Positions 3,001-19,401 of a stretch of DNA of 64,000 bases are shown one piece after another (the stretch's first letter is position 1; each line of letters begins with the position of its first letter). Both the position numbers and the translations under genes were made by a program. The notes beneath the pieces are model-generated. The model was given only the letters and a program-made list of their open reading frames with translations. It did not search any database and had not been told where the DNA came from. This DNA is from Vitrella brassicaformis CCMP3155 (Eukaryota; Protista; Chromerida), in NCBI GenBank assembly GCA_001179505.1, contig CDMY01000887.1, positions 124,001 to 188,000 on the forward strand, in the 5' to 3' direction.

Positions 3001-6000
3001 CGTCGCGCATAAAAGCCTGCACCTCTCCAGCCACCGGGAATAGCGTTGCTCGTATGTTAGTGGTCCAGTGTTTAGTCTGCACATGATAGACCCAGCCGGG
3101 CTGTAGCTGCCCCGCAGGGATGGTTCCATTAGGAAAAGAGATCTGCTCTGTGAAGACCTGCACTGCTTGTTGACGCTTGTAGGACACGAGAGGGGTCAGA
3201 GTGATGCGAGACTTCGTGTCAAGATAAACCGCTGAATGAGATGACACCGGCCTCTCGATGGAGCGGTCGATTTTGTGAAACACTGGTTGGACGCCGTCCA
3301 TAATCTTGATTGCGCCAGCAATGACACTCCCTTTGCTAAGGTCTTGAAATGCCTCAACAGCAATAACGTAGATACCGTCTTTTGGACCGCTGAGCGTGTA
3401 GGTGTCCCGCATGTCCATAAACGAGGCGACGTGTGTCGCAACGGCAGGGAGCGGCAAACTTGCTTTGATCAATGAGTGGTTGAAGCAGTCGTGTCGCGGT
3501 GCATCGGCAACCAGCGCGCGACGCAGAAGCTGAGGGGCTGAAAAATAAGGCATCGTACGTGTTTCCGAGGCCGCAAACATCTCCATGTCATAGTCGATTA
3601 AGGGCGTCTAGATGCAGTACCAATCTGTGTAGACCGGTCGGAGCCTGTCTTCCGCCTCAAAGTCCAGAACAATATCTAGAACTTTTTCTGCGGCTGCGAC
3701 ATGGACAGAGAGAGGGCCGGTGCATCGTACTTGTCGATCTTGACAAGGAATGACGACTGTCTGTTGCAAGTTGGTGACGAGACATTCGCAGTGACGTTGA
3801 ACACGCGCCCGATGTCTTGGTCTGTAATGTTTCTCAGCAGGGTAGATCCATTGCGGCCATCTGGCAGCCACATAACTGATCCGCCTTGTGGAGTGTCCAC
3901 ATTCAAGCGTATCTATACAAGATGCAGAGACATCAATGTATGCGATACGGAAACCCCTTGTACCTGCTCTGTTGGTTTGAACGTATGCATTCTGTGATCG
4001 ACTGCGGCAGCCGGCTCCTCGCAGCACGTGCCATTGAGCAAGGTGATTCGCACACTTTTGGTTACATGAACACCGACATAGCTCATAGCGGCCACGGATA
4101 AGAGCAGTGGCTTGGTGCTAATCCGATAGACTTCGGCCAGCAATGCGCCGCTGATCACGAGAGTTGTAGCTGACGCGTTCAACCCTGCAACATAAGATCG
4201 GCGAGTTGTTTTCGTCTATTGCCTTTTCTGAGCTGTCTCACTACCTGACGCGCTAGTCAGTATGTCGTTGAGCGATTCACACGCCTCTTTTGGCTCTTCG
4301 CACTCAAAATGAAAGTAGAGTTTCCGACCACCACCGCCGCTCACATACACGTCAACGTGCAAACTTTCCCTCCCGCCCAGTGAAAATGATTGTGGCGCGA
4401 TGACTCGGATGGATGGGAGGATGCTGTCCGCCGTTGGCCCCACAGAATGCTTGATTTCGTCAGTGCCATTGAGCCCGCTCTTGAGCCACCCCTTGGCAAT
4501 CATCGCTTGACGTCCCGCAATGACCAGGATACACCTTCTGTCCGCTGTTGCCCACGTGCAACGAGCGCCTTCACCAAAAACGCCCATGTTCGCAATAGCT
4601 GAGCAGGGATAGCTGACGTTGTCCGTGAGAGGCGCCTCGAAACAGACGTGAGACACGGCGGGGGAAAATGACGTCTCAGCCACCGTAAGGCGAGGCATAG
4701 GATAACGCGTGGTGTAGGTGTCGTTTCTGCAGTGGCCGGAGCAGCCGTCTTGAGACCACAAGTTCCCATCATCGCATTGCTCGTCTTCATCGATGACGCC
4801 GTTCCCGCATGTGGCATTCTGCGACAGTCAACGAGGGTATGAGAATGAAGTGAGACAATCGGACGTGTTCATCTCTCGATGTGCTTACGATGGTTGGATA
4901 CACCTGGATCAGAGAGGTCGTCGTCGGCTCGATGGCGAAGTCACTTGGATCTGTACATGTCCCGCTGCCCACCCCACGACACAAGCACGCCTTGAAGCTT
5001 CCTTGGTGTGGCAATGTGACATCCCCCCCCCCCCCNNNNNNNNNNNNNNNNNNNNNNNNNNNNNNNNNNNNNNNNNNNNNNNNNNNNNNNNNNNNNNNNN
5101 NNNNNNNNNNNNNNNNNNNNNNNNNNNNNNNNNNNNNNNNNNNNNNNNNNNNNNNNNNNNNNNNNNNNNNNNNNNNNNNNNNNNNNNNNNNNNNNNNNNN
5201 NNNNNNNNNNNNNNNNNNNNNNNNNNNNNNNNNNNNNNNNNNNNNNNNNNNNNNNNNNNNNNNNNNNNNNNNNNNNNNNNNNNNNNNNNNNNNNNNNNNN
5301 NNNNNNNNNNNNNNNNNNNNNNNNNNNNNNNNNNNCCAGCCGTTTGGGTGTAGATCCTTGGGGCACCGAGCAATTGACCGCCGGTAGAGAGGAGCCACAT
5401 ACCGTGCTTGCATCGCCGGCAATAAGGATCAATTTGTGCCTGTCTGCGTCCAAGAGGTTTCCCCTCACGAATAGCGTCATGCTTTCGCCTGCCGTGAGGG
5501 GCTCTGTCGAAGCAAGATACTCGACAGCGCTGACAATGCTACCATCTGACACAAATCCGACAAACGACAAATGAGACGACCACAGCCGAAACAGCCTTTC
5601 TGCTGGCTTACCAATGCTCGTTGTTGAGTTATGACGCTTGTCCTCGCCATCAGCCGCCAGCGATACAGCGCACTTGCATAGACAGAGCTCAGGGGGCGTC
5701 TTATCGATGGTCGTTGTACAGACAAGCGCATCATCACAGGCAAGCAAGAATCCCTCCGGTCGGGCAGACTGGCCGCACGTTGAAAGACGTAGTCGGTCCG
5801 TTCTTCTGTTGAAGTCCTGAGTGAGAGTGATGCCTTGCATTTCGCCGTTGCTGAGGGCGAAGTGGAGGGTGCTCGGTGTGAAATCAGGAGCGAGCACGGG
5901 GGTCAAGAAACAGAGACACACCAATGAAGATCCACACACAGCCCCGGTGTGCGACTCTCCTGGTGTGTCTACGCTTCCTGGTGTCTCTGCTGTAGGCGCG

Positions 6001-9000
6001 ATGGGTTCTGAACATAAAAGAGGAAAAGCATCAGCGGAGACAGCCGATGTGCTTTTCTTATTGCTCACCATCCACCGCCCGCAGCCCAGTGTAAGAATAG
6101 AATCTGTTTGCATTGCCGGCGAAATCGGAGATCGCTCCTTCATTCAGGCTGATACTTGCATTGGCGGGCCATCCATCGAACTGGACTGTCACGCCGAGAA
6201 AACTTGCATGAAAAGGAGGGATCATGGCGTCTGTGAGCCTCGCATTGGTGACCTGTTTTCGACAGACATGAGATATGATTTCCCTTCCCTCTGAGGCTGT
6301 GGCACCGTTGTGCATTAGTTTTCTTACCTCAATCCTCTCCTTGTCGAGTTCTGTAATCGGCTCAGAAAACCTAAATTCCATCGTGAAAATCTCCTTGTTT
6401 GTCTCAATCGTCTGATTCGTCTCCGGGGACACTACGTATGGGAGCTCGTTTGCTGCAGGGGGGCAATAGCAAAAGAAACCGCGTCATGTCGCTTATTTTT
6501 CCCTGATTACCTGTCGTGATAACGGTGTGTGTTGCAACCTCATTCATTGCCGTGCCTCCCTCGTCAATGGCCACACAGGAGATCTCATACGTGGTGCCTT
6601 GGACTAGCTCAGAGAATGAGAACTCACCACGTCTGCCCTTAATCCTGCGTTGCTGCGCTGATATGCTTGTTGTAGGGGGCTTGTTAACTAAATCGAAGTC
6701 GGCAGGCGTGAAGGTCGCCTCGGGATGGTCATTCTGGATGGGCTGACAGAATATATCCGCTGTCTCATCCGCATCCACCTCAATCTGGATTGTCGTCTCG
6801 CTGACGGTGATGGACGTTGTGTTGAATTCAAGAGAGGGAGGAGTGACATCTGCCAGACACAACGACAGAGCAAGTGCAAATCTCTCACTGGCTTCACTGT
6901 TTGCCACAAATAATACCATAAGCAAGCGCCAACTGAGCCGCTTGAACGTTCGTGTTTCCGGCGAGATCCACCACCTTTCCGGCATCCACTCTTATGTCAA
7001 TGTCCCCCTCAGCGGCTGCTCGCATGCGTAAGACATTGCCGTCCATCGACAGAATTTCGGCGTTTGTCAATGTGAAGATGCTCCCCGTGATGGTCTGCAC
7101 ATCCTCCGAGATACTCATGGTGACATTGAAGTCTGGATCTCGTGTTTTGGGGGCAGAGGGAGAAGTGAGGGTCACCACTGGGGGAGTTGGATCTGACAGT
7201 AAGCAGAGAAAGCATAGGAGATTTGTGTGGCTGAGTGCAGCCACGCTTTTGTTTGCATGTCTACCCACCGTTTTCGACGTTTATTGTGTTAGATCTCGTA
7301 TTCTTCAGCCCAGCTGCATCTTCCATCGACTCCTCGCTCGGATAAATGCTCAAAATTCCGCCTCCAGTCTTCGCACTTGGTACACTCAGAGCCACGTCAA
7401 AAAATATGTCGGTCAGCTCTTCGCCCGTGGAAACACTGATACTTTCGCCGTCGATGAAGAAATGCCAGTCAACAGTAGTCGGCGGCGTACTGAAGGAAAC
7501 ATTGACAGGAACGGAGCTCGTGTTGATGAGAGATGGGGCACTTAGTGTGGCGGTCGGGATCCACGGCAGAGACTGGCCCGATGCGATGTAATCTGCACAG
7601 AAAAGGAAAGTTGACGACAGACTTGTAGGAAATCGATGCTTTTGTCTTTACCGAAGGTGACGTTAAGAGGCTCTGACTCTTGATTTGGATTGCTTGCGCC
7701 GTCGACAGCCAGTCCCTCGTTTGCTTTGATTGTCACGATGTCTTTCGTTGGAATGACATCCAATGAGAATGAATTGCCCGTCCCCGTGATGCCGCCAGCC
7801 GCCATGTCGCCATTGGTGGTCCTCAGAGCCGAGACATCGCTTATGGTGACATCCTTACTGAATGAGAGGTTGACATGGAAGGGGTAGTCTTTGGTAGTCT
7901 CCTGGTTGTCTTGCAGATACAGCACTGCCGTAATCGTGGTCTGATTGGTGGGGGTCGCTGGAAAATGGTTCGAATGACACATGCCCTGTGTGTGTACGGG
8001 CGTTTGTTGTTGAGTCTTACTGTAGTTTAGGGCGATGGAAGCTGGTGAGTTGCTCCTGTATGAGGCGGCGTCATCGACCACCACACCGCTTCCGATCGTC
8101 ACATTCACTTTGCCCGCGACTGTGGGACGCAAGTCGACTGTTACTTGTGCTATGCAACAAACACACACACAGGGAGAGGTCGATGATCACACGCATACGC
8201 CTCTGCTGCACAGAGATCATCTCCGAATGGAACGCATCTTTTGCCTTACATGGCTGGACGACCACATTGGAGTACACAACTGCCGCCGTTGCCTGCTGTG
8301 CAGGATCCAGCGCCTGAAGAGACAGTGTGAGGCCTTCACTGATGTTGAAAGTAGTGACGTCGATGGGGACGTCAAAGGTGACAATCAGGTGGATGGGAAG
8401 CGACTCCCACGTCGATTGGGGGGAGGACAGGTTAACCGTGAAGGGCACCACCTCTGACACAGATGCACCAAATTGTGCACACAGGTGAACAGGTCTACGT
8501 GTACCGTAAGTGAAAGTGAAGTTGGTGTTGGGATTTGGGTTTCCAAATGCGTCCTGCGGATCAATCATGAGTAAGAAAATGCAAATTTGTAAGTGCACAG
8601 ATGGATGTGAGTGTCCACTGTACCTGCACAATGCCCTGCATGACGGTCAGCTGCAAAGAGGTCACGTTGCTGCTACTTGGCGGGTCGGGCATTATCTCCG
8701 CCTCATAAAGTGTGTCATCGCCAGCCACCGGCCTGCACACGTAAGCACAGGCCACACTCATGAGAGGATGCGTGCGTATACCTCATGTCAATGAGAGTGC
8801 CGTTGGTCACGAAAGACTGCTGGTCGGCCGTCGCAAAGCCAGCGGACACAGGCTCGCCGAAATCGATCGTCAGAATGATCGGCGCGTTGTGATAAACATG
8901 AAAGGGGTTCCTGATCGATGGGACGGGGAGGTCTGTTTTGTAATAGCACCAACGGGTGGTGTTTCCATCAGCCGAGTTGATGAGCGAATAGTAAAGGCGA

Positions 9001-9993
9001 CACTCGGGCTCTTCCCAACGTCTGGTGTGTTCGATAGCAGTACAACGCCTGTATACACACATCTCGCATCTATTGCATCACCGTGTGGTGTTGTCCATCA
9101 GCGAAGGTACCTGTCTTCAATGCACTCGATTGAGCATTTCATCCGCCTCTCCCACTCAACAGTAGCGTCAGTCCAGGAGCTTACGTCTCCAAGAGCGTAA
9201 GGCTGTTCCTGGCCATTGTGGCGACACGAGCCATCAAGCTTGTTAACTGCATATTCGCATCTGTGAGCGTCTTCAATCACGGATTTTCCAGTGACATACC
9301 GCCGGTCGCTGCAGTGCCGTTCTGTCTCCTCTGGATGCACATTGCGTTGGGCGAGGGGGTCGATGCGGGAGTAGCGATGCTGTGGTGAACCTCACATAGC
9401 CTCTCGCTATCTGTCTGCACACCCACTGGCTGCACACAGACACACACACACACACACATGTACGCTTCTGGATGACTGCCACAAGTGCGCCTCACCGAAA
9501 GCTGAAATCCTGAGCACACGACGCTCGACAGACAAAGGACAGCATATTCATGCCTTCTCGCCTCTATGTCATCCTCAGGGATGGTCGAATTCAGCGTGTA
9601 GCCATGAAGGAATGAACTGTTCTTGTACCTGCACAGAAGCCGGAGACCATGCATGTCTCTATCGATGGGCCTGTGAGCCTGTGAGTCTTACGAGAACACT
9701 CTCTCTGGTTGTTTGGTGACCCCATCCTGTTTTGTTGCGTTGTTGATGCACTCAGTGTCTGGGTTGTCCTCTGCAGACACATGCGGTCATACACAGTAGT
9801 CAGACATGGTAGAGAGGGCTTTCTTACTGAATTCATCCTCCCACTCCGAGCCTGTGGCGTTGCCTGCAGTGCAAACATGACCAAACGATGCAGCGTCACC
9901 ACATGCTACATACACCTTGCGTCTTCTGTGATACTGCTGACATGGCGTCCATAGCCCAAGCAAGAGAGTGAGAACCGCAAGAACGGACGGCAT
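1..9993 (-). CDS. Giant multi-exon surface/adhesion protein, polycystin-1-like ectodomain: signal peptide, Ig-like (Big_13-type) repeats, FN3-like domain, Myxococcus-type Cys-rich repeat, REJ-like region, GPS, TM, cytoplasmic tail; 3'-partial (runs off window start)
   Basis: ATG at 9993 gives MPSVLAVLTLLLGLWTP (signal-like). Ig-like exons include DPTPPVVTLTSPS...DAGKVVDLAGNTN (~7030-7200). CGNGVIDEDEQCDDGNLWSQDGCSGHCR lies at ~4725-4810, a long REJ-like exon at 2264-3586, spliced CMQWDE...HCNVSVTDESIE|CACTHLSTF at 1630-1800, and a TM exon GDIGLLFVAFSCAFLIVPVIALSLR at ~1405-1480. The last exon (from ~335) is open to position 1. Not every internal exon was traced, and a gap interrupts the gene at 5036-5335. 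Confidence 0.75.
1630..1810 (-). other. GPS (GAIN) autoproteolysis motif of gene 1
   Basis: C-x2-W...C...C-A-C-T-H-L-S-T-F, rebuilt across a phase-0 intron (donor GAG|GTCCGT, acceptor ATGCAG|TGT, exon starts 1658). Confidence 0.8.
5036..5335. other. Assembly gap (300 N) next to a poly-C tract
   Basis: N run preceded by a C13 tract; lies inside gene 1. Confidence 0.98.
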
Positions 9994-10957
9994 CTTTTGG
10001 GAGACCTCGACTGCGGTCAAGAGGAACAACTTGAAGCGTGGTGAGGCTGAGATGGCTCGTCGTGACCGCTTCCCATGTGCAGGTGGCACGGGGGGGGCCA
10101 AAAAAGTGGGATAAGCTCGCATTTCCCGATCGAACTCATGTCAGTGAGCCTTTTCCCCGCATAAAGGTCTCCGCCCTATTGTCTCCGCCTCGAGCACAAG
10201 CACACACTCACCGCATAGACCGCACAGAGAGTGGCTCAACCACGCAAGTACACACAGGTGTGAACTGCATGAAGGAATGCGTCCGTTCGAGTGAGAGGTC
10301 TCAGTAGTAACGTGCATCAGCCTGTGAGCACCTTTGCACCAGTTATGCCTACGCACACACCCTTACGCGTGCAAGGAAAAACGACACTAGTCAGCCCTCA
10401 GCCCACCCACACACCAGTTCTGATGGATCGGTCGATAAGACAGGCAAACCTGGTGCCACTATCGCACAAGACACTGACCTCTAGTCACTAGACACAGAAG
10501 AGAGGTAGAGAAAGACAGACAGACAGACAGACAGGGAGAGGAGAAAGAACCTGGTTTGTTTGTTTATGTACACGCGAAAGGGACAATACCTACACATGTA
10601 TACGTATACATATTGGTGGGTGGGTGGATCGGTATATGTATATAGCGCACCGAGCCAGCCATCGCCATTAAATAGCATCCAATCATAAAACGCACGAATG
10701 CAATGCAATGCAATGCAATGCATGCATTGGTTGCACGTTCACACCACACACTCGTGTCGGCCGCAAACTGCAATCCGCATGAATGGGAAAACTTGCAGAA
10801 GACCTGCGTACTGCCTATGCATAGCAGACACACTGCACCGTCATACGCATAAATGCACGCAGTCACGCAGCCACATGCACAAACACACACGCAGGCAGCC
10901 ATCAAAGCACAAATGGCCCCTTCTGCACCCACCACCCCTCCCTCCCCGCTCCCTCAT

Positions 10958-12001
10958 CTACGTCCCCATCGGCTGCCCCTGCTGCCCCTGTTGCTGCTGT
11001 TGCTGCTGTTGCTGCTGCAGAAGCATGTCCGCAAGGTATCGCTGCTGCACTGCCCGAATGTCAACGCCTGGTATCGATATCAGATGCAGGTTGGCAAGTG
11101 TAGGCAGTGCCGCCGCCGCCGACTGCTGCTGCTGCTGCTGCTCCCCCTCGGGCGGCTTCTCGTCCCACGCTGTCCTCCTCCTGACCGCCGGCAATGCCTC
11201 CCCCTCCCTCTCACTCTGACGCGACGGCCCCTCACCGTCATCAGCACCCATCGCCCTTGGTCGCTCCCGCTCCTCGCTGCGGGCCCTCTCCCTCCTGGCA
11301 CGTTTGTGGTCCCTTGAGTCCCGACCATTGCGGGAACTGCCGCGCTTTCGAGGAGGGCGGTCAGTGGACGGGGACCGGCTGCTGGACGGGTGCGATTCGA
11401 TGACCCTATCCTGAAACCCACTGCCGCCCCGCCGGATCTTGTCGCGATCCCGCCACCGGCGACGGTCGTCGGGGCGATCGCGCCAGTCTCGCTCCTTGGA
11501 CCGGTCGCGACACAGTGGCTGCTCTCCGTCCCTCTCACGGATGGGTGGCCGCTCTTGCTGTCTCTCCCTCTCCCTCTCCCTCTCGCGAACGGGCGGCCGG
11601 TCTCGCTCACAGGGAGGGGTGATCGCCGGTCTCACTCCCTCGGCGTCAGTGGTGGGCGACATGCTGGGCGATGGCTGTGGCTTGGTGCGGGAGAAGTGGA
11701 GGTGGGGGTCGAGGTCGGGAAGGTCCTTGTGGGGCGGGTGGGGGGTGTAGGTGATGTTCTCGGGGATGTTGAAGGCCTGGCGGACGGCCTCGGGTATGGT
11801 GATGTATGGGTGGTGGATGGGGGGGCCGTTGCCCTGCCGCAGCTCCTCGACGAAGGGCTCGTACAGCTTGAGCAGGGCGTCGGGGGCCTCCTCGAGGTGG
11901 CTCAACGCGTTCTGCAGATCCTGCACTCACAAGACGACAGAACAAAACACCGTACCGTGACAGTGTCCTGCCTGCATTTGGCTTGGCTGCATGCACCCGT
12001 G

Positions 12002-12032
<31 letters not shown>

Positions 12033-15000
12033 CCTCACCGTCGGCAGCTCGATGTCGACCTTGCGATGCGCCACGTGTGGGCGGCCCTCGTCATCGATAT
12101 ATGGCTCGTTGAATGCGACGTGGTTGCAGTGCAGGAACACCCGTGGGCACCACCGCTGGTCCTCCTTGGCACGCTCCACGTAGGGCGAGCCCTCGGCGTA
12201 GGTGGTGTCGCGCACTAGGGGGTGGGGGGTGCCGGGCGCGGCGTTGTTGGCCATGTGCACACGGATCTGGTGAGTCCGGCCTGGCCATAGAGAAAGAGAG
12301 AGATCAGCCGCATCGCATCGCCATCCCTGTGTGTGTTGGCAGGGGTGGAGTGACGTACCTGTGTCGATTTTGAGTGTGACGAGGCAGAATCCGTCTGTTG
12401 GGCTGTTGATAGAGGTGCCCTTATGCTTGTAGACCTTCTGCACGGTGAAGTGGCTGATGGCGTGGGTCAAGTGGTTGCGTTGGCTCTCGTAAGCCTCGCG
12501 CGTTCGACGCTCCGACGGATTGTACACCAGGCAGTTGTTGATGGTGCCGTGCGGGCGGACCCTCATCTGCCCGTAAACCTGCCACACACACACACAGACA
12601 CACACAGAGAGAGAGAGAGGGGAATGCGTGTGTGGCCATCGCGTGTGTGTGGTGAGTTGACTGAGGGGGCTGACTGACCAGTGCGGTGTAGATTTTGACG
12701 AAGTTGCGTCCCTGCATCTCTGCGTTGAGGTACTGGTAGGCCCAGCTGTCTTTGGCGCACACGATGGCGCCCGTGGTCTCGCGGTCCAGCCGCTGCAGGT
12801 AGCCATACTGCCGGCTCATGTCGCTCAGAATCGGGTACTTGGCGTGGTCCAACGAGTGGTAGGACCAGCCCTGCAGACAACACAACGAGCATGCAACATC
12901 CATCCAAGCAGTGACAAGCTTAGAGAGAAGGGTGTGTGTGGGTGTGGGTGTGGGTGTGTGAGTGTGTGTGTGTGGTGCGGCTGTCTTACGGCCATCTGTG
13001 GTTTCTCGCCGTTTGTTTCCTTGGCGGTTTTCATCTTGTCGACGGTCAGGTTGGGCAGGTCGAAGGGGTCCTTGGTGGCAGACAGCCAGTCGGGCGGCTT
13101 GTATAAGACCCAACACCTGCACACAGACACATCAACAAACGACACCGCACTCGCCATCATCTCCCTCTCTCCGTTCTCTGTCTTGTCTCGCTCACGATTG
13201 CATCTCCTTGACGACGCTCGGCACTGTCCACGGAATGGCCTTGTCCCTCATTCCACCCACCAGACCCAGCGACGCCGCAGCAGCTGCTGCTGCTGCCGCC
13301 GCCGCCGCCGCAGCAGCTGCGGCCGATGCACCACCAGACCCAGCAGAGGCACCCGCACCCCCACCACTATTCGTCCCCCCGTTGCCGTTGCCGTTCGCGA
13401 CACCCAACATAGCGCTGCCACTGCCGCTGCGAGAAGTGCTGAGGCCGCTATCCGACCGCCCGATGGCTGCCTTGGACGTCGGCTTGGCCGCCGGCTTGGT
13501 TGCGTCCTTCTTGCGCGGGATGGGAGCCATGGGGCGAGATACCGTCGGCTGGGGTGGCTGCTGCTGGGGCTGCTGCTGCTGCTGTGGTGGTGGGGCCGAT
13601 TGAGTGGCTTGAGTGGGTTCTGGCTGATTGGCGGCAGGTGCTGCTGGCCCTGACGGCACTGGTGCTGCTGACGCTGATGGTGCAGATGTGCCGTCGGGTG
13701 CCAGCATCTGGGGCTCGACATTCTGTTCGTCATCGCCTGAGGACGCACAGGCAGACGGACAAAGAGACAGACAGACAGACAGGCAGACAGACAGACAGAC
13801 GTGCAGACATGCTGCTTCCGTGTTTATTTGTGCCCCCTGTGCGGTGTGCGCGCCCTGACCTTTGTCTACCTCCATGGAAGCAGCGCCGGCCTCTGGACGC
13901 TCCTCGCCTGCAGAACATCAGTCAACCAAAGGAGCCTGTCTCTGCTTGGCTGCCTGCTCGCGCGTGTGTGAGTGAGTGACGTCTCGCACCCTGAGCAGAC
14001 GGGGACTCCTGTGCTGTGGGCGGCGATGGGCCGTCGTCCGTCTGGTAGGCCTGACCGGGTGACGGTGACGGCCCCTCCTTCTCTCCCTTGACCTCACTCG
14101 ATGCCGCCGCCTCCCCAGCCGAGCCCTCCTGTTCTTTGCCCCCCTTCTCGTCCTTCATAATGACGTCCTTCGTCGATTCCTCCTCGGGTCGAGACAACCC
14201 GGCCGCCGCATCGACCTCAATGGCAGCCGCCATGTCGGCCTCAGCTGCAGCGGGGGCCGCCTCTCCCTGCCCCTCTCCCTCTCCTTCCCCGTCCCCCTCC
14301 GTATCAGCTCTCCGCCGCTTCTTGCGCGTGCGGCGGTCCTCCTTGGCCTCCTTGCTCTCCTTGGCGTGCTTCTTGTGCTTCTTCTTGTGCTTCCGGGGCT
14401 TCTGGGGGCGCTTGGGCTCGTTCTCGCTGTCGTTGTCCTTGTCATTGTCATTGTCCTCATTGTCGTCGTCATTGTCTGGCGATATGGCGGCGGCGGCGGC
14501 GGCAGCAGCTGCATCTGCTGCTGCTGCTGCTGCTGTGGCTGAGGAGGGTGAGTGTGAGGGGGAGAGTTTCGTGTGGTGCGATGATGCCGCTGCCGGGGAC
14601 GATGGCTTGGGGCGCTTCTTGTCCGCGAGCCGACGACGGGCCTTGTCGCGCAGGCTGACAGGGAGGGGAGAGGAGGGGAGAGGAGGGGGTGGGGTGTGTC
14701 TGTGTCTGTGTCTGCTGCCTTGTGTGTGTGTGTGTGTGTGTGTTGCCTACCGTCTGAACCATTGTTTCTTGACTTTGACGCATCGCTTCAGGAGAAGAGG
14801 GGAACCCTCGAAGCTGAAGCGATGACACACACCACACAGAAACACACGGAGAGTCACATGGCGTTCGGCTTGCTCACCCTGATGGCTAATGGAAGGTGCG
14901 TTGCGGTGCGTACCTTGTCTTGGGTTCCCATGTGTTGAGTTTGGCCTTGTATCCCTTCCACTTGACGTAGTACTGACCGTGGCGATCGTCCTTGGCCTTG

Positions 15001-18000
15001 CGGTACTCCTCTATACGCTGAACACACAACCGAACCACAGAACCACAGCGCATCGACACACATGAGATGAGGTGGGTGGATGCTTGGGTGTTTGGGTGTT
15101 TGGATGTTTGGATGTTTGGATGTTTGGATGCGCGCGTGCTCACCTGGACTTCGTACTCGTTGACGGTGCTGTCGTCTTCGCTCTTGTCATTGGACTCGTC
15201 CACAAGCTCGTCGCTCATGTCAGAATCAGCATCACCTATCAACTCCATCCCATCCTTCAACACACACACACAACACACATTCCCCTGCTTCCCTTCGGCT
15301 CTCTCTCTCTCTCTCCCTCTCTCTCTCTTACCACTTCAGTCACGCTGATGTCGTCACTGTTGGCGTCATGCTCCACGCCACCACCGCCACCTGATGCAGT
15401 CCCTCGGTCACTAGGCACACCACCAGACGACGCACCACCGCCGGCACCACCAGCAGCAGCAGCCATAACCGCGGCGGCAGCAGCGGCTGCAGCGGCCACA
15501 CGCCGCTTGGCAGATGGGGGGGAGGGGGGCGGCATGGCTCGCTTGTCGCGGTCGTCGTCATCCTGAGGCAAGTAAGCATCGACAAACAACATGACAAAGC
15601 ACATCACGAATGGGGGAGACGCTCTATGTGTCTGTCTGCCCCCGGGGCGCCGCGCCCCGTCCCCACTCACTCACTCACTCACTCACCTGAGCAGCAGCGG
15701 CATCCTCCTCCCCCTCCATGACTACATCGCGGGAGGCCTCCTGCCCCTTGTTCTGCTTCTTTCTCTTGCCGGCCCCCAACTCCTCCGAACTCTCCTCGGT
15801 CGCAGAGCTATCGTTATCGTCATTATCGTTGTCCTTGTCCTTGTCGGCAGCAGAGCCGTTGTCCCCGCCGCCCTCTGCTGCCGCTGCCGCTGCTGATGCT
15901 GATGCCGGTGACGGTGCTATCTGGTTGACAGTGGTGCGGTAGAAGTCCTGTACGGCTGCGAGGATGCCGGCGCCATGTTCCTTGAGGGTGAACGACTTGG
16001 TCTTGTTCTCGCCGCGGTCGTTTTTCCACCGGGCCGTCATGCCCCTGTACAGGCCGTCCTTCTTGAAGGGGGTCACGGAACGCGGAAGCTCCCCCGCAGC
16101 CTGATTTAAATAGATGCAGTCACACACAGAGACGTGTGTGTGTGTGGGTAAAGGTCAGGTCAGGTCAGGTGATAGCTCACCTTGAGCTCATCCATCCATT
16201 TCTTGAAGTCGACAGCGGGGTCTGACGACGGCTCGCGCGACACGCACGGCGAGGTGGGTGCATTCTCCTCCCTGGCCTTGCCACCACGGCCCTGCCCCCT
16301 GCCTCTCCCCCTCCCACGCCCCCCAGTCCCCTCGGTCGACCGCCCGGCACGCCCACTGCCACCCCGCCCTCGCGATCGGCCGCGGCCACCGCGGCCCCTT
16401 TTGCCACGGGTGGCGGGCTTGATGTTGTCAGAGGGCGTGTGTGATGGTGGTGGGGGGAGCGATGCGTCACGGTTGGAGTCCTCCTCGTCTCTGTCTCTGT
16501 CTCGTATTGACGCGTCGTCCTCGTTGTGTCGGCCTCGGGGTCCCCCTCGCTGTCCGTCGTTGTCGTCTGATGCTGATGCTGACGGGGCGTGCCCGATGGC
16601 GCCGTACTCGATGTTGGCCTTGACGGGGTCCTCGCAGTACTGGGGGAGCACTGCGGGACACACACACTCATTTGTTTGTGGTGGGTGGATTGGCATGGCG
16701 TGTGTGGTGTGTTGGGTACGCCTAGGTGGTGGTGTCGGGTCGGAGGGTTTGTTGCTCTTCTTGCGCTGCGTGTTGTCGATGATGAGCATGGCCATCTCGA
16801 TGCCCGTGATCTCCTCGTTGTCGCCGTCCTCATACTCAATGCTGAACAGACCGCTGCTGCTGCCGTAACCTGACACAGTACCCTGCACATGCACACCCAC
16901 ACAAACACATGGGCAGATCGGATGATCTGATCTGTCGCCTGTTTCTCGCCCCCTCCCTCCCTCCCTCCCTCTCTCTCCCTGTTTCGTCTCGTACCTGGAA
17001 GTAGTAGCTATTACGCGCATCGTTCCACGCGTTGAATTTGCGATCGATGACCGACTTGCCCAGATGCACCCCCAGCAGCGGCACCCACCCACCACTCTGC
17101 CCACCACCCGAACCAACGCCCGCAGACGCAGCCGACGCACTCCCGGCACCTTTGCCGCGAGGGACCGCTGCCGCCGCCGCCGCCGCAGCAGCAGCAGCTG
17201 GTTCTGCTGGTTCTGCTGAGTCAGGCTCTGGTGGGGGTGGTAGGTTGTGCATGTGCAGCGAGTAGAGTCGTTCGGCGATGTAGCACTTGTACTTGGTTGT
17301 CATGTTGGGGGGCAGGTCGACGAGAATCTCGTCCCCCGGGTTGAGTGCCGTGCCGGGCCTCCGGTGCAGCAACAGGTGCGGCCACCCGTCGCGATACACC
17401 TACACCCATACCCAGACACACATCAACCACAACCCACTCGTTCGTGTGCTGTGCTGACCGACCGTGGCGATCTGCACGTTAGATTTTCGCTTCTGCATGC
17501 TCTGCAGCACCGCCGCCGGCTGAAAATACGCGAGGCGGTTCTTGGCCGCGCGGAAGTCGAGCATCAGGCTGCCGTCCTTTGGCACAGCTGGCCGCTGGAG
17601 CGGCTGCTCTGGCTCCGGCTCCTGCTGTGAGTGGGAGCTGGGTGTGTTGCCGTGGGGAGGGTGTGGTGGCGGGAGTGCGTCGTGGACGAAGCGCAGCGGC
17701 CAGATATGCCGGGGGTCGTTCCATGACTCGGGCGTCTGCGGCACCACCTCACCCGTCAGCTCACCCAGCAACGTGATGCTCTGTGTGCACGACAAACCAA
17801 ACCAATAGCCACAGCCACACACAAAACACACAGATCATCATTCCATCTGTGAGTTGAGTGCCCCCCTCCCTCCTCCCTCCCCACTCCCTCCCTGCCTCCT
17901 GACCTACCTTGTCTGAGGCAGCCTTCGGCTCGCCCCGGTAGACGCACACGAAGGCCGAATCGTCTGCCTTAAGACCAGCACGCTTGGGGTGTTTTGGGTC

Positions 18001-18249
18001 GGTGACCCGCCGCAGTTCCAGTGTGGCATTCTCCTGTCTGGTGGCGTCCTCAAAGATGCGCAAGAGGTTGGGGTAGCCCTGCAGCACCCTCGACGAGGTG
18101 AAGTAGTGGGGGGACGCCCTGGCCTTGTCGCAGTAGTCCGCCATCTGGTTCTTGATGGCCGGGTCGCGGCACAGCTGGTGCCCGGCGTACTGCGCCTGGT
18201 CATCTCGCAAGGCGTCCTCTAGCGCAACAACCGCTGAATCAGATGTCAT
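10958..18249 (-). CDS. Multidomain protein (~1,872 aa, 18 exons): degenerate SET, Tudor-like, AP2-like, chromodomain, RluA-family pseudouridine synthase, Arg/Asp-rich tail
   Basis: Hand-traced exons: 18249-17908, 17780-17463, 17399-16995, 16882-16720, 16650-16181, 16100-15687, 15562-15332, 15254-15144, 15017-14914, 14813-14751, 14654-13990, 13907-13860, 13736-13196, 13116-12990, 12870-12679, 12578-12359, 12280-12039, 11920-10958. All junctions are GT-AG and phase-compatible; the sum is 5619 nt (1873 codons). Confidence 0.75.
11890..13230 (-). other. RluA-family pseudouridine synthase catalytic domain
   Basis: Motifs SVVKEMQSCWVLYKPPDW, YLQRLDRETTG (catalytic Asp), KIYTALVYG, TGRTHQIRVHM, RVFLHCNHVAF and ELPTDLQ, all rebuilt in frame. 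Confidence 0.93.
14751..15160 (-). other. Chromodomain
   Basis: Spliced sequence NEYEVQRIEEYRKAKDDRHGQYYVKWKGYKAKLNTWEPKTSFEGSPLLLKRCVKVKKQWF; aromatic-cage Y, W and Y are present. Confidence 0.9.
15935..16095 (-). other. Divergent AP2 (ApiAP2-like) DNA-binding domain
   Basis: LPRSVTPFKKDGLYRGMTARWKNDRGENKTKSFTLKEHGAGILAAVQDFYR resembles the ApiAP2 consensus GV..DK...W.A.W..nGk.k.k.Fsvk.yG...A...A. Confidence 0.6.
16780..17085 (-). other. Tudor-like domain (PTM/DIR17-type pattern)
   Basis: Spliced sequence LGKSVIDRKFNAWNDARNSYYFQ|GTVSGYGSSSGLFSIEYEDGDNEEITGIEMAMLI matches the GtV..y....ly.i.YEDGD.Eel pattern. Confidence 0.65.
17305..18030 (-). other. Degenerate SET-like domain
   Basis: LELRRVTDPKHP...SITLLGELTGEV...LMLDFRAAKNRLAYFQP...SNVQIATVYRDGWPHLLLH...ALNPGDEILVDL is colinear with the SET motifs; RFINHS and ELxYDY are altered. 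Confidence 0.6.
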
Positions 18250-18549
18250 GAGTGCAGGGGTGAGGGCAGGGCAGGGCAGGTGTGATGAGGCCGGGGCTCA
18301 GAACGGCCGCATGAGATCACAGGACGAGAGAGCGCGCGGAGGCCAGAGGGGCGCCAGATGTGCGGGCCTTCTGGGTCTCCCCGGCAGCAGCGGTTTCAGG
18401 GAGCACCCCAGGCCAGATTGCGAGCTTTTTGATTCTCACACGCCTTTCGTGAACGGCGCGTGACGAGGCTGTCTGAAGCCGAAATCAGCATATCCCTTCA
18501 TTTGCTGTCGAAGATCTGCCTCCAGTCCATCGTTTGACTCATCATCACG

Positions 18550-19401
18550 ATGGCCAGGCGGCTGCCCAAGACTCTCACTGATCAGTTCTTCCGAGCACAG
18601 CCAGACGTCGCCCCAGCTGCAGCTGCCACTCCCACTCCCACTCCCTCTCCCACTCGCAACAGCAGCAAACCCAACGCGTCAGCCAAAGCCAAGGCCACCC
18701 ACCATGCCAACAGCGGCAGCAGCAGCAGCAACAGCAGCAGCAGCAAGGGCAGGACCAAGCGGCCCATTCCACTCGCCATCAGCACCACTGCGGAACCCAG
18801 GCAGCAGCAGAGAAACCATCAGCCAAAGGGAAGCTCAGGCAAGGACGACACGAGCCCAACCGACAGCTGCGCGTCAAAGTCAAACGAGGAGTTCCTCCTC
18901 GGCGTTCAAGACTTGGCCCGAGAAGGCGACACAGAGGAGTTGAGGCGGCTGTCCGTTGACTTCATCCGTCGGCTGGACACCATGCGGCCCAAGCAGATCA
19001 GCCTCTCACTCAAGGCCTTCGCGCAGTCGCCCCTCAACGACGGCAACGCGCTCATGCGCAGCGCAGAGCTCTTCCAGGAGGCGGCCTTCAGGCTGGTCCC
19101 CTTTCTGCCGCAGTTCGGCGCCACCGACTTGGCTGTGACGGCTCACGCTTTGGCCCGGATGGGGCTGAAGAGCGATGTGGTGCTGGGGGAGATTGCCGGC
19201 CAGGGGATGGACAAGATGGGCAAGTTTGGTGGGAGCGACGTGGCCATGATGGCCAACGCGTTCGCGAGGCTGAATGTGGTCAACTACCCCCTGTTCAAAG
19301 AGATGAGTGAGTAGGCACCCAAGACACAGACAGAGGGGCAGGGAGAGAGGAGACAGGTCACACTTGATGGATGGCCTGTTGCCCGCTTCTCTCTCTCTCT
19401 C

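Follow-up and report, generated by a model that had tools for sequence, protein, structure and literature searches.

A single Vitrella brassicaformis gene encodes an HP1-type chromodomain and a complete RluA pseudouridine synthase domain: a candidate for chromatin-guided RNA modification

Can one gene couple domains that read chromatin to an enzyme that modifies RNA? This question is raised by a minus-strand locus at positions 10958 to 18249 of a 64,000-nucleotide (nt) stretch of the Vitrella brassicaformis CCMP3155 genome (assembly GCA_001179505.1, contig CDMY01000887.1, positions 124,001 to 188,000), which we call the window and whose numbering is used throughout. The original prediction, made from the DNA letters, was that SET-like, Tudor-like, AP2-like and chromo segments are fused here to an intact RluA pseudouridine synthase within one 18-exon open reading frame (ORF). 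We found that the locus is one gene with one spliced transcript, and that it represents a new domain architecture of known parts.

To define the gene we rebuilt it from the translations of all three minus-strand frames, without the earlier exon list. The rebuild returned the figures that had been claimed: 18 exons and 17 introns (63–127 nt), all with GT-AG ends and agreeing exon phases, yielding a coding sequence of 5619 nt including the stop codon that runs from 18249 to 10958 on the minus strand and encodes 1872 amino acids (aa). Nine introns were taken from spliced RNA contigs, three were set by contig-letter counts combined with the need for GT-AG ends and an uninterrupted frame, and five were picked among frame-preserving GT-AG candidates. 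The start codon at 18249 is the first in-frame ATG past an in-frame stop at 18298–18300. The resulting model is as follows.

10958–18249, minus strand: whole coding sequence, 18 exons, 1872 aa (independent rebuild and spliced RNA contigs)
18249–17908, 17780–17463, 17399–16995, 16882–16720, 16650–16181, 16100–15687, minus strand: exons 1–6
15562–15332, 15254–15144, 15017–14914, 14813–14751, 14654–13990, 13907–13860, minus strand: exons 7–12
13736–13196, 13116–12990, 12870–12679, 12578–12359, 12280–12039, 11920–10958, minus strand: exons 13–18
13860–13907, minus strand: 48-nt phase 1-1 micro-exon (exon 12) bridging the low-complexity linker; both flanking joints seen in runs X5 and X6

Runs of (TG)n and (CT)n are frequent in most of the introns; they appear as 'SLSLSL' or 'CVCVCV' in ORF lists, and because of them repeats were skipped at several exon borders when the contigs were compared.

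We compared the contigs of RNA runs over window positions 12400–18399. One long spliced contig was present in each of two runs from different studies, X5 (4212 nt, study P4) and X6 (3980 nt, study P2). Each begins in the poly-Q codons close to the stop and reaches exon 5 without a break, taking in the micro-exon and the exons of both the RluA domain and the chromodomain. Their pieces lie at 12989–13113, 13193–13735, the 48-nt exon, 13989–14478, 14914–15017, 15144–15255, 15336–15567 and 15719–16099, with 16180–16501 in X5. The junctions on which the proposed fusion turned, 13116/13196, 13736/13860 and 13907/13990, are each present in both X5 and X6. Nine introns in all are seen as contig joints in one or both of these runs: 13117–13195, 13737–13859, 13908–13989, 14814–14913, 15018–15143, 16101–16180, 16651–16719, 17400–17462 (X6 only) and 17781–17907. 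Of the corresponding joints, 16650/16720, 17399/17463 (X6 only) and 17780/17908 connect exons 4–5 and exons 1–3. The 123-nt intron 13737–13859 is present in runs X2 and X3 and in DNA runs X9–X11, and runs X4–X7 have the exons without that intron; contigs of X4 and X7 that are unspliced (DNA-like) agree with the window. The 5′ untranslated region is covered by contigs at least to 18365.

The remaining introns were placed indirectly. Introns 14655–14750, 15255–15331 and 15563–15686 are uniquely set by contig-length arithmetic and the open frame. The four introns within the RluA domain are backed by a gap-free alignment of homologues over each junction, and they agree with the calculated 3′ end of the long contig at ~10989–10995, since this falls within the CAG run that encodes poly-Q (10988–11017), where an assembly is expected to break. 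Intron 3 (16883–16994) is predicted from the frame, the splice consensus and the continuity of a Tudor pattern across it.

The transcript data also revealed a second expressed copy or allele, ~96% identical to the gene described here. Variant contigs in X4–X7 differ from the window by 19 substitutions and two indels over 16505–16884 and 17572–17806; the indels add 3 nt in exon 5 and shorten intron 3 by 6 nt at its 3′ end, and 12 non-synonymous and 6 synonymous changes fall in coding sequence. In both X5 and X6 the counterpart of intron 4 has been spliced out of the variant, and on this basis we regard the variant as expressed.

The C-terminal part of the protein contains the enzyme domain.

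11876–13227, minus strand: RluA-family pseudouridine synthase, aa 1282–1567, end of exon 13 to start of exon 18 (PF00849, clade profile and blastp)
12784–12786, minus strand: codon of the catalytic Asp1363 in the motif QRLDRETTG (aligned with HRLD in 1prz, E. coli RluD, and with the Asp that is invariant among relatives)

The exon-15 piece matches PF00849 in Pfam at 42.1 bits (cut-off 26.8). A library-wide HMMER search with the stop-free piece comprising exon 16, its intron and exon 17 returned 93 relatives, and a clade profile was built from an alignment of ten of these. The spliced protein scores 213.8 bits against the profile over positions 7–268 of 270, corresponding to aa 1282–1567. By local blastp against the 93 relatives, aa 1283–1589 aligned end to end, with a best match (P0073) of 33% identity (E 5e-37), and no match was found upstream of aa 1275. 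Each of the four exon junctions within the domain lies in a conserved part of the alignment that is free of gaps. Assignment to the RluA family is secure because the clade profile matches the solved structures 1xpi, 1prz, 2i82, 5vbb and 5uba (RluC, RluD, RluA, RPUSD1 and RPUSD4) with E values from 5e-45 to 9e-20.

The claim of an intact active site is borne out at the level of motifs. Asp1363, in motif II (family pattern xRLDxxTSG), pairs with HRLD of RluD and with the invariant D90 of the relatives' alignment, and KPPDW (KPPxW), QRLD, KIY (KxY), GRTHQIRVH, VxDxxY and WCPRVFLH (WCPRxFLH) are all kept; the sole invariant residue to differ is a Ser beside the catalytic motif, which is Thr here. 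By these criteria the domain is complete, with its catalytic residues in place, and it would be expected to have isomerase activity. Pseudouridine synthase folds can also serve as structural modules: PDB matches of the clade profile include 6yxx mt-LAF3 and 7aoi, which we take to be catalytically inert synthase folds acting as structural factors in mitoribosome assembly. A chromatin scaffold in which the RluA fold binds RNA, for example a non-coding RNA, in place of modifying it is nevertheless improbable given that Asp1363, GRTHQIRVH, KxY and WCPRxFLH are all retained.

The last codons of exon 13, which is otherwise low in complexity, specify the first strand of the RluA domain. As had been proposed, 'PSVVKEMQS|CWVLYKPPDW' (the bar marks the exon junction) can be aligned to the first strand conserved among homologues, and the equivalent stretch is uninterrupted in the genomic DNA of a Vitrella paralogue (locus L003, contig CDMY01000218.1, protein CEL94387.1). 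This placement bears on whether the fusion might be an assembly artefact or a read-through chimera of neighbouring genes, since De Bruijn contigs can fuse neighbours and a second, ~96% identical copy exists. Such an origin is highly improbable: 12 introns have been precisely removed, the frame stays open over 5.6 kb, the enzyme begins within the upstream exon, the same form was assembled in runs of two studies, and the unspliced DNA-like contigs follow the window.

Upstream of the enzyme lies a chromodomain, followed by a low-complexity linker of ~400 aa that separates the two.

14762–15158, minus strand: chromodomain, aa 814–870, exons 8–10, aromatic cage Tyr815/Trp838/Tyr841 (PF00385, PDB matches; both flanking junctions in RNA)

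Exon 9 alone matches PF00385 at 37.8 bits (cut-off 25.1, E 1.9e-9) and 43 chromodomain chains in the PDB at E ≤ 0.01, including those of HP1, CBX, Polycomb, CDY and SUV39H1. Alignment of 'QYYVKWKGYKAKLNTWEPK' over HP1 'EYYLKWKGYPETENTWEPE' places Trp838 and Tyr841 at the cage (KWKGY), and the third cage residue, Tyr815 in 'EYEVQRI' of exon 8, was placed by eye against HP1 'EYxVEKI'. The domain thus reads, from its sequence, as a canonical HP1-type chromodomain with an intact aromatic cage, as the original prediction held, and it would be expected to bind methyl-lysine. Like HP1, Polycomb, CBX and CDY it has the core 'YYVKWKGY...NTWEP' and all three cage aromatics. In those proteins, however, the chromodomain is partnered by a chromo-shadow domain or by silencing or acetyl-CoA modules, and not by an RNA-modifying enzyme.

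A second candidate reader lies closer to the N terminus.

16760–17084, minus strand: Tudor domain, aa ~326–396, split by intron 3 (PF21743, PTM/DIR17-like Tudor, on exon 4)

The Tudor-like segment that had been noted by eye scores just over the Pfam threshold: exon 4 alone matches PF21743 at 28.0 bits (cut-off 27.2, E 1.8e-6) over profile positions 14–45 of 48. There is no PDB sequence match for the exon-4 piece. Read by eye, the Tudor pattern runs on across intron 3 ('...SYYFQ|GTVSG...IEYEDGDNEE'), and this is the chief reason for joining exons 3 and 4.

Several compositionally biased regions accompany these domains.

16280–16408, minus strand: RGG/RG box, aa 491–533 (motif scan of the spliced protein)
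14306–14413, minus strand: Lys/Arg-rich clusters resembling nuclear localization signals, aa ~955–990 (sequence reading)
10988–11608, minus strand: Arg-Asp/Arg-Glu/Arg-Ser-rich tail, aa ~1657–1800, and poly-Q, aa 1854–1863 (dipeptide count)

The basic clusters include KHKKKHKKH and RKKRRR, and the N terminus is acidic. The tail contains 43 dipeptides of the RD/RE/RS type per 160 aa, and RD/RS-like tails are of a kind known from splicing-associated nuclear proteins. Together the RGG box, the basic clusters and the tail are consistent with a nuclear, RNA-associated protein.

Two further segments had been given names from their sequence patterns.

17250–18027, minus strand: N-terminal region, aa ~75–270, exons 1–3, the 'SET-like' part (SET resemblance by eye)
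15918–16079, minus strand: strand-strand-strand-helix module, aa ~574–627, the 'AP2-like' part (AlphaFold2 single-sequence model)

For the N-terminal region, neither Pfam nor PDB gave any match, SET included, on the pieces of exons 1–3, where the segment is split over three exons that were searched singly. By eye the motif order resembles that of a SET domain; on this tentative hand alignment the cofactor-binding NHxC would be replaced by 'AYFQPA' and the catalytic C-terminal Tyr by VDL ('EILVDLP'), so that both motifs would be lost. Language-model features of exon 2 lean weakly to an EVE/PUA-like domain (0.83, low recognition), and those of exon 1 gave no lead.

The AP2-like DNA-binding domain was not supported. 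A single-sequence AlphaFold2 model has three strands and a helix (predicted local distance difference test score 65.6), and this strand order, with a 'YRG...W...KSF' pattern seen by eye, is what the module has in common with ApiAP2 and AP2/ERF domains. It differs from them in having no hidden Markov model (HMM), PDB-sequence or homologue match: the exon-6 segment has no Pfam match to AP2 (PF00847) at E ≤ 1, no AP2 among its PDB phmmer matches at E ≤ 10, and no homologue in 5.8 billion clusters in a search limited to proteins 0.55–1.75 times the query in length. Four fold searches (Foldseek against the PDB, a VIA-wide search, AFDB Swiss-Prot and an atlas shape search) likewise placed no AP2 structure among their best matches, a negative weakened by the low confidence of the model. 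The best fold matches, none above noise level, were COMM, Pur-alpha, PC4, Cren7 and chromo-shadow; 3igm, the Plasmodium AP2 structure, ranked 40 (Z 2.9), and no plant ERF occurred in the top 30 Swiss-Prot models. Language-model features provided a sub-threshold AP2 lead (0.85, with PF00847 in 22 of 100 neighbouring clusters). The strand-strand-strand-helix order is common to AP2, chromo, chromo-shadow, Pur-alpha, PC4 and COMM domains. On this evidence the small module is unlikely to be an AP2 domain and is possibly nucleic-acid-binding.

Is the combination of readers and synthase found elsewhere? PF00849 was found in all 23 of the long RluA relatives that we scanned with Pfam (442–4462 aa), and a few of these add CCCH fingers, MATH/USP7 or WW domains; a chromo or Tudor domain was found in none (0/23). 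The prediction had described the architecture as one not known from characterised proteins, and no relative inspected has it, nor did we find a description of this domain architecture in the literature. The relatives that could be named come from Vitrella brassicaformis itself (paralogues), Alexandrium, Porospora and Cardiosporidium. Vitrella CEL97914.1 and CEL94387.1, Alexandrium A0A7S4RFI4, Porospora KAH0477850.1 and Cardiosporidium KAF8819531.1 belong to the same RluA clade (25–33% identical) and share with this gene WCPRxFLH and a C-terminal 'LPxDLxxAL' helix, but in them Pfam finds PF00849 only. The better-known E. coli RluC, RluD and RluA and human RPUSD1 and RPUSD4 have the same catalytic domain, with the motif II Asp, KxY, GRxHQIRxH and the LH motif, but carry at most an S4 RNA-binding domain and have no Tudor or chromo domain, RGG box or RD-rich tail.

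Two of the closest nameable relatives, second and third best overall, are the Vitrella paralogues, RluA-only proteins with lengths of 488 and 831 aa. A tblastn search of the gene model against the paralogue loci L002 and L003 gave RluA similarity and no chromo or Tudor match. At L003 the 5′ half of the RluA sequence is present as an exact tandem duplicate (8566–9075 and 10352–10861), and ~5.8 kb upstream carries no annotated gene. The closest relative of all, P0073, is a 490-aa product from a 3.5-kb scaffold with Ns (JGI Ga0186167_101073). Within positions 1–400 of this scaffold a run of Ns immediately precedes the called start, and the open frame continues past these Ns. P0073 may therefore be truncated at its N terminus, which limits what it says on whether the fusion is lineage-specific.

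The gene itself seems to be missing from public protein sets. In the library-wide HMMER search, which included the Vitrella proteome, no protein contained exons 16–17 of this gene (best score 49 bits); no protein containing exons 4–5 was found among those of 208–663 aa, and neither of two metagenome scans, one using exon 2 and the other the start of exon 18, gave a match. As no protein with the exons searched was found in the public protein sets, that of Vitrella included, this gene model is a new annotation.

The RluA-only paralogues also bear on what the locus produces. An internal start in exons 11–13 could give rise to an ordinary working RluA-only enzyme, leaving the long fusion as a minor or regulatory product; in-frame Met codons at 1181, 1221 and 1274 lie just upstream of the RluA domain, and transcript starts are not readable from contigs. 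The fused spliced form is, however, what both RNA runs assembled. Word depth, a weak measure, is alike over the 5′ exons and the RluA exons, which argues weakly against an abundant transcript of the RluA part only, and molecule ends were not reported to pile up. We consider this two-product arrangement quite unlikely.

What might such a protein do? Its composition and domains predict a nuclear location and RNA substrates. The best mechanistic reading, which we hold at about evenly balanced confidence, is chromatin-guided pseudouridylation of nascent RNA. The chromodomain and the Tudor domain would anchor the protein to methylated histone tails, the flexible linker would let the C-terminal synthase reach RNA made or processed at that chromatin, and the synthase would convert uridine to pseudouridine in that RNA. 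A more specific form, in which histone methylation read by the HP1-type chromodomain and the Tudor domain selects the nascent RNAs for the fused RluA enzyme (histone-mark-guided pseudouridylation), is tentative.

Stand-alone pseudouridine synthases are known to act on chromatin-associated pre-mRNA (bioRxiv 10.1101/2020.08.29.273565; PMC10381945). The logic proposed here, an RNA writer brought to nascent RNA at chromatin, is that of several co-transcriptional systems: human PUS1, PUS7 and RPUSD4 on pre-mRNA, dyskerin with Pol II, and N6-methyladenosine (m6A) deposition through H3K36me3 and METTL14 (bioRxiv 10.1101/2020.08.29.273565; PMC10381945; PMC8968631). Those systems are linked by protein-protein contacts, whereas here readers and writer would form one polypeptide, and the likeness is one of possible mechanism and not of family. 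The gene bears on how stand-alone synthases pick their pre-mRNA targets and on whether chromatin state steers them. As a Rosetta stone, the reader-synthase fusion predicts a functional link that may be maintained by separate proteins in other eukaryotes, and it provides a defined construct for testing the link between chromatin and pseudouridylation.

Five observations weigh against chromatin-guided action by a single fused product. Histones are not the only methylated proteins that Tudor and chromo domains read. The Tudor match is marginal and partial. Intron 3, which splits that domain, is not seen in the RNA contigs, where the adjoining poly-Ala-coding stretch was skipped as a repeat. A shorter RluA-only isoform is compatible with the assembled contigs, Met1274 lying 8 residues before the RluA domain. 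Finally, the architecture was not found in any orthologue, which leaves no argument for function from conservation.

In the main rival reading the enzyme is tethered to ribonucleoproteins (RNPs) and not to chromatin. Here the Tudor domain would recognise dimethyl-arginine in Sm or RGG proteins, perhaps including the RGG box of this protein itself, the chromodomain would read a methylated non-histone protein or RNA, and the synthase would be brought to small nuclear RNPs, pre-ribosomes or nuclear bodies. Tudor domains commonly bind methyl-arginine, the protein carries both an RGG box (aa 491–533) and an RD/RS-like tail, and the solved structures nearest to the RluA clade profile are the rRNA enzymes RluC and RluD. 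The Tudor segment, however, matches the PTM/DIR17-like family and not an SMN-type model, and the chromodomain is most like the histone-reading domains of HP1, CBX and Polycomb. We regard tethering to RNPs as possible and somewhat doubtful, and retain chromatin-guided pseudouridylation as the preferred reading.

Two further ORFs were noted in the window. A divergent plus-strand ORF (region 18250–19314) begins at 18550, 300 nt from the ATG of this gene; given this spacing and orientation the two probably share a bidirectional promoter. Its 254-aa exon has no Pfam match. On the minus strand, a 400-aa ATG-to-stop ORF at 4941–6143 matches no Pfam family and has no homologue among proteins of 220–700 aa; it may be non-coding or an exon of a longer gene. 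The GC content of the window is ~0.60, and that of the Vitrella contig at paralogue locus L002 is 0.598.

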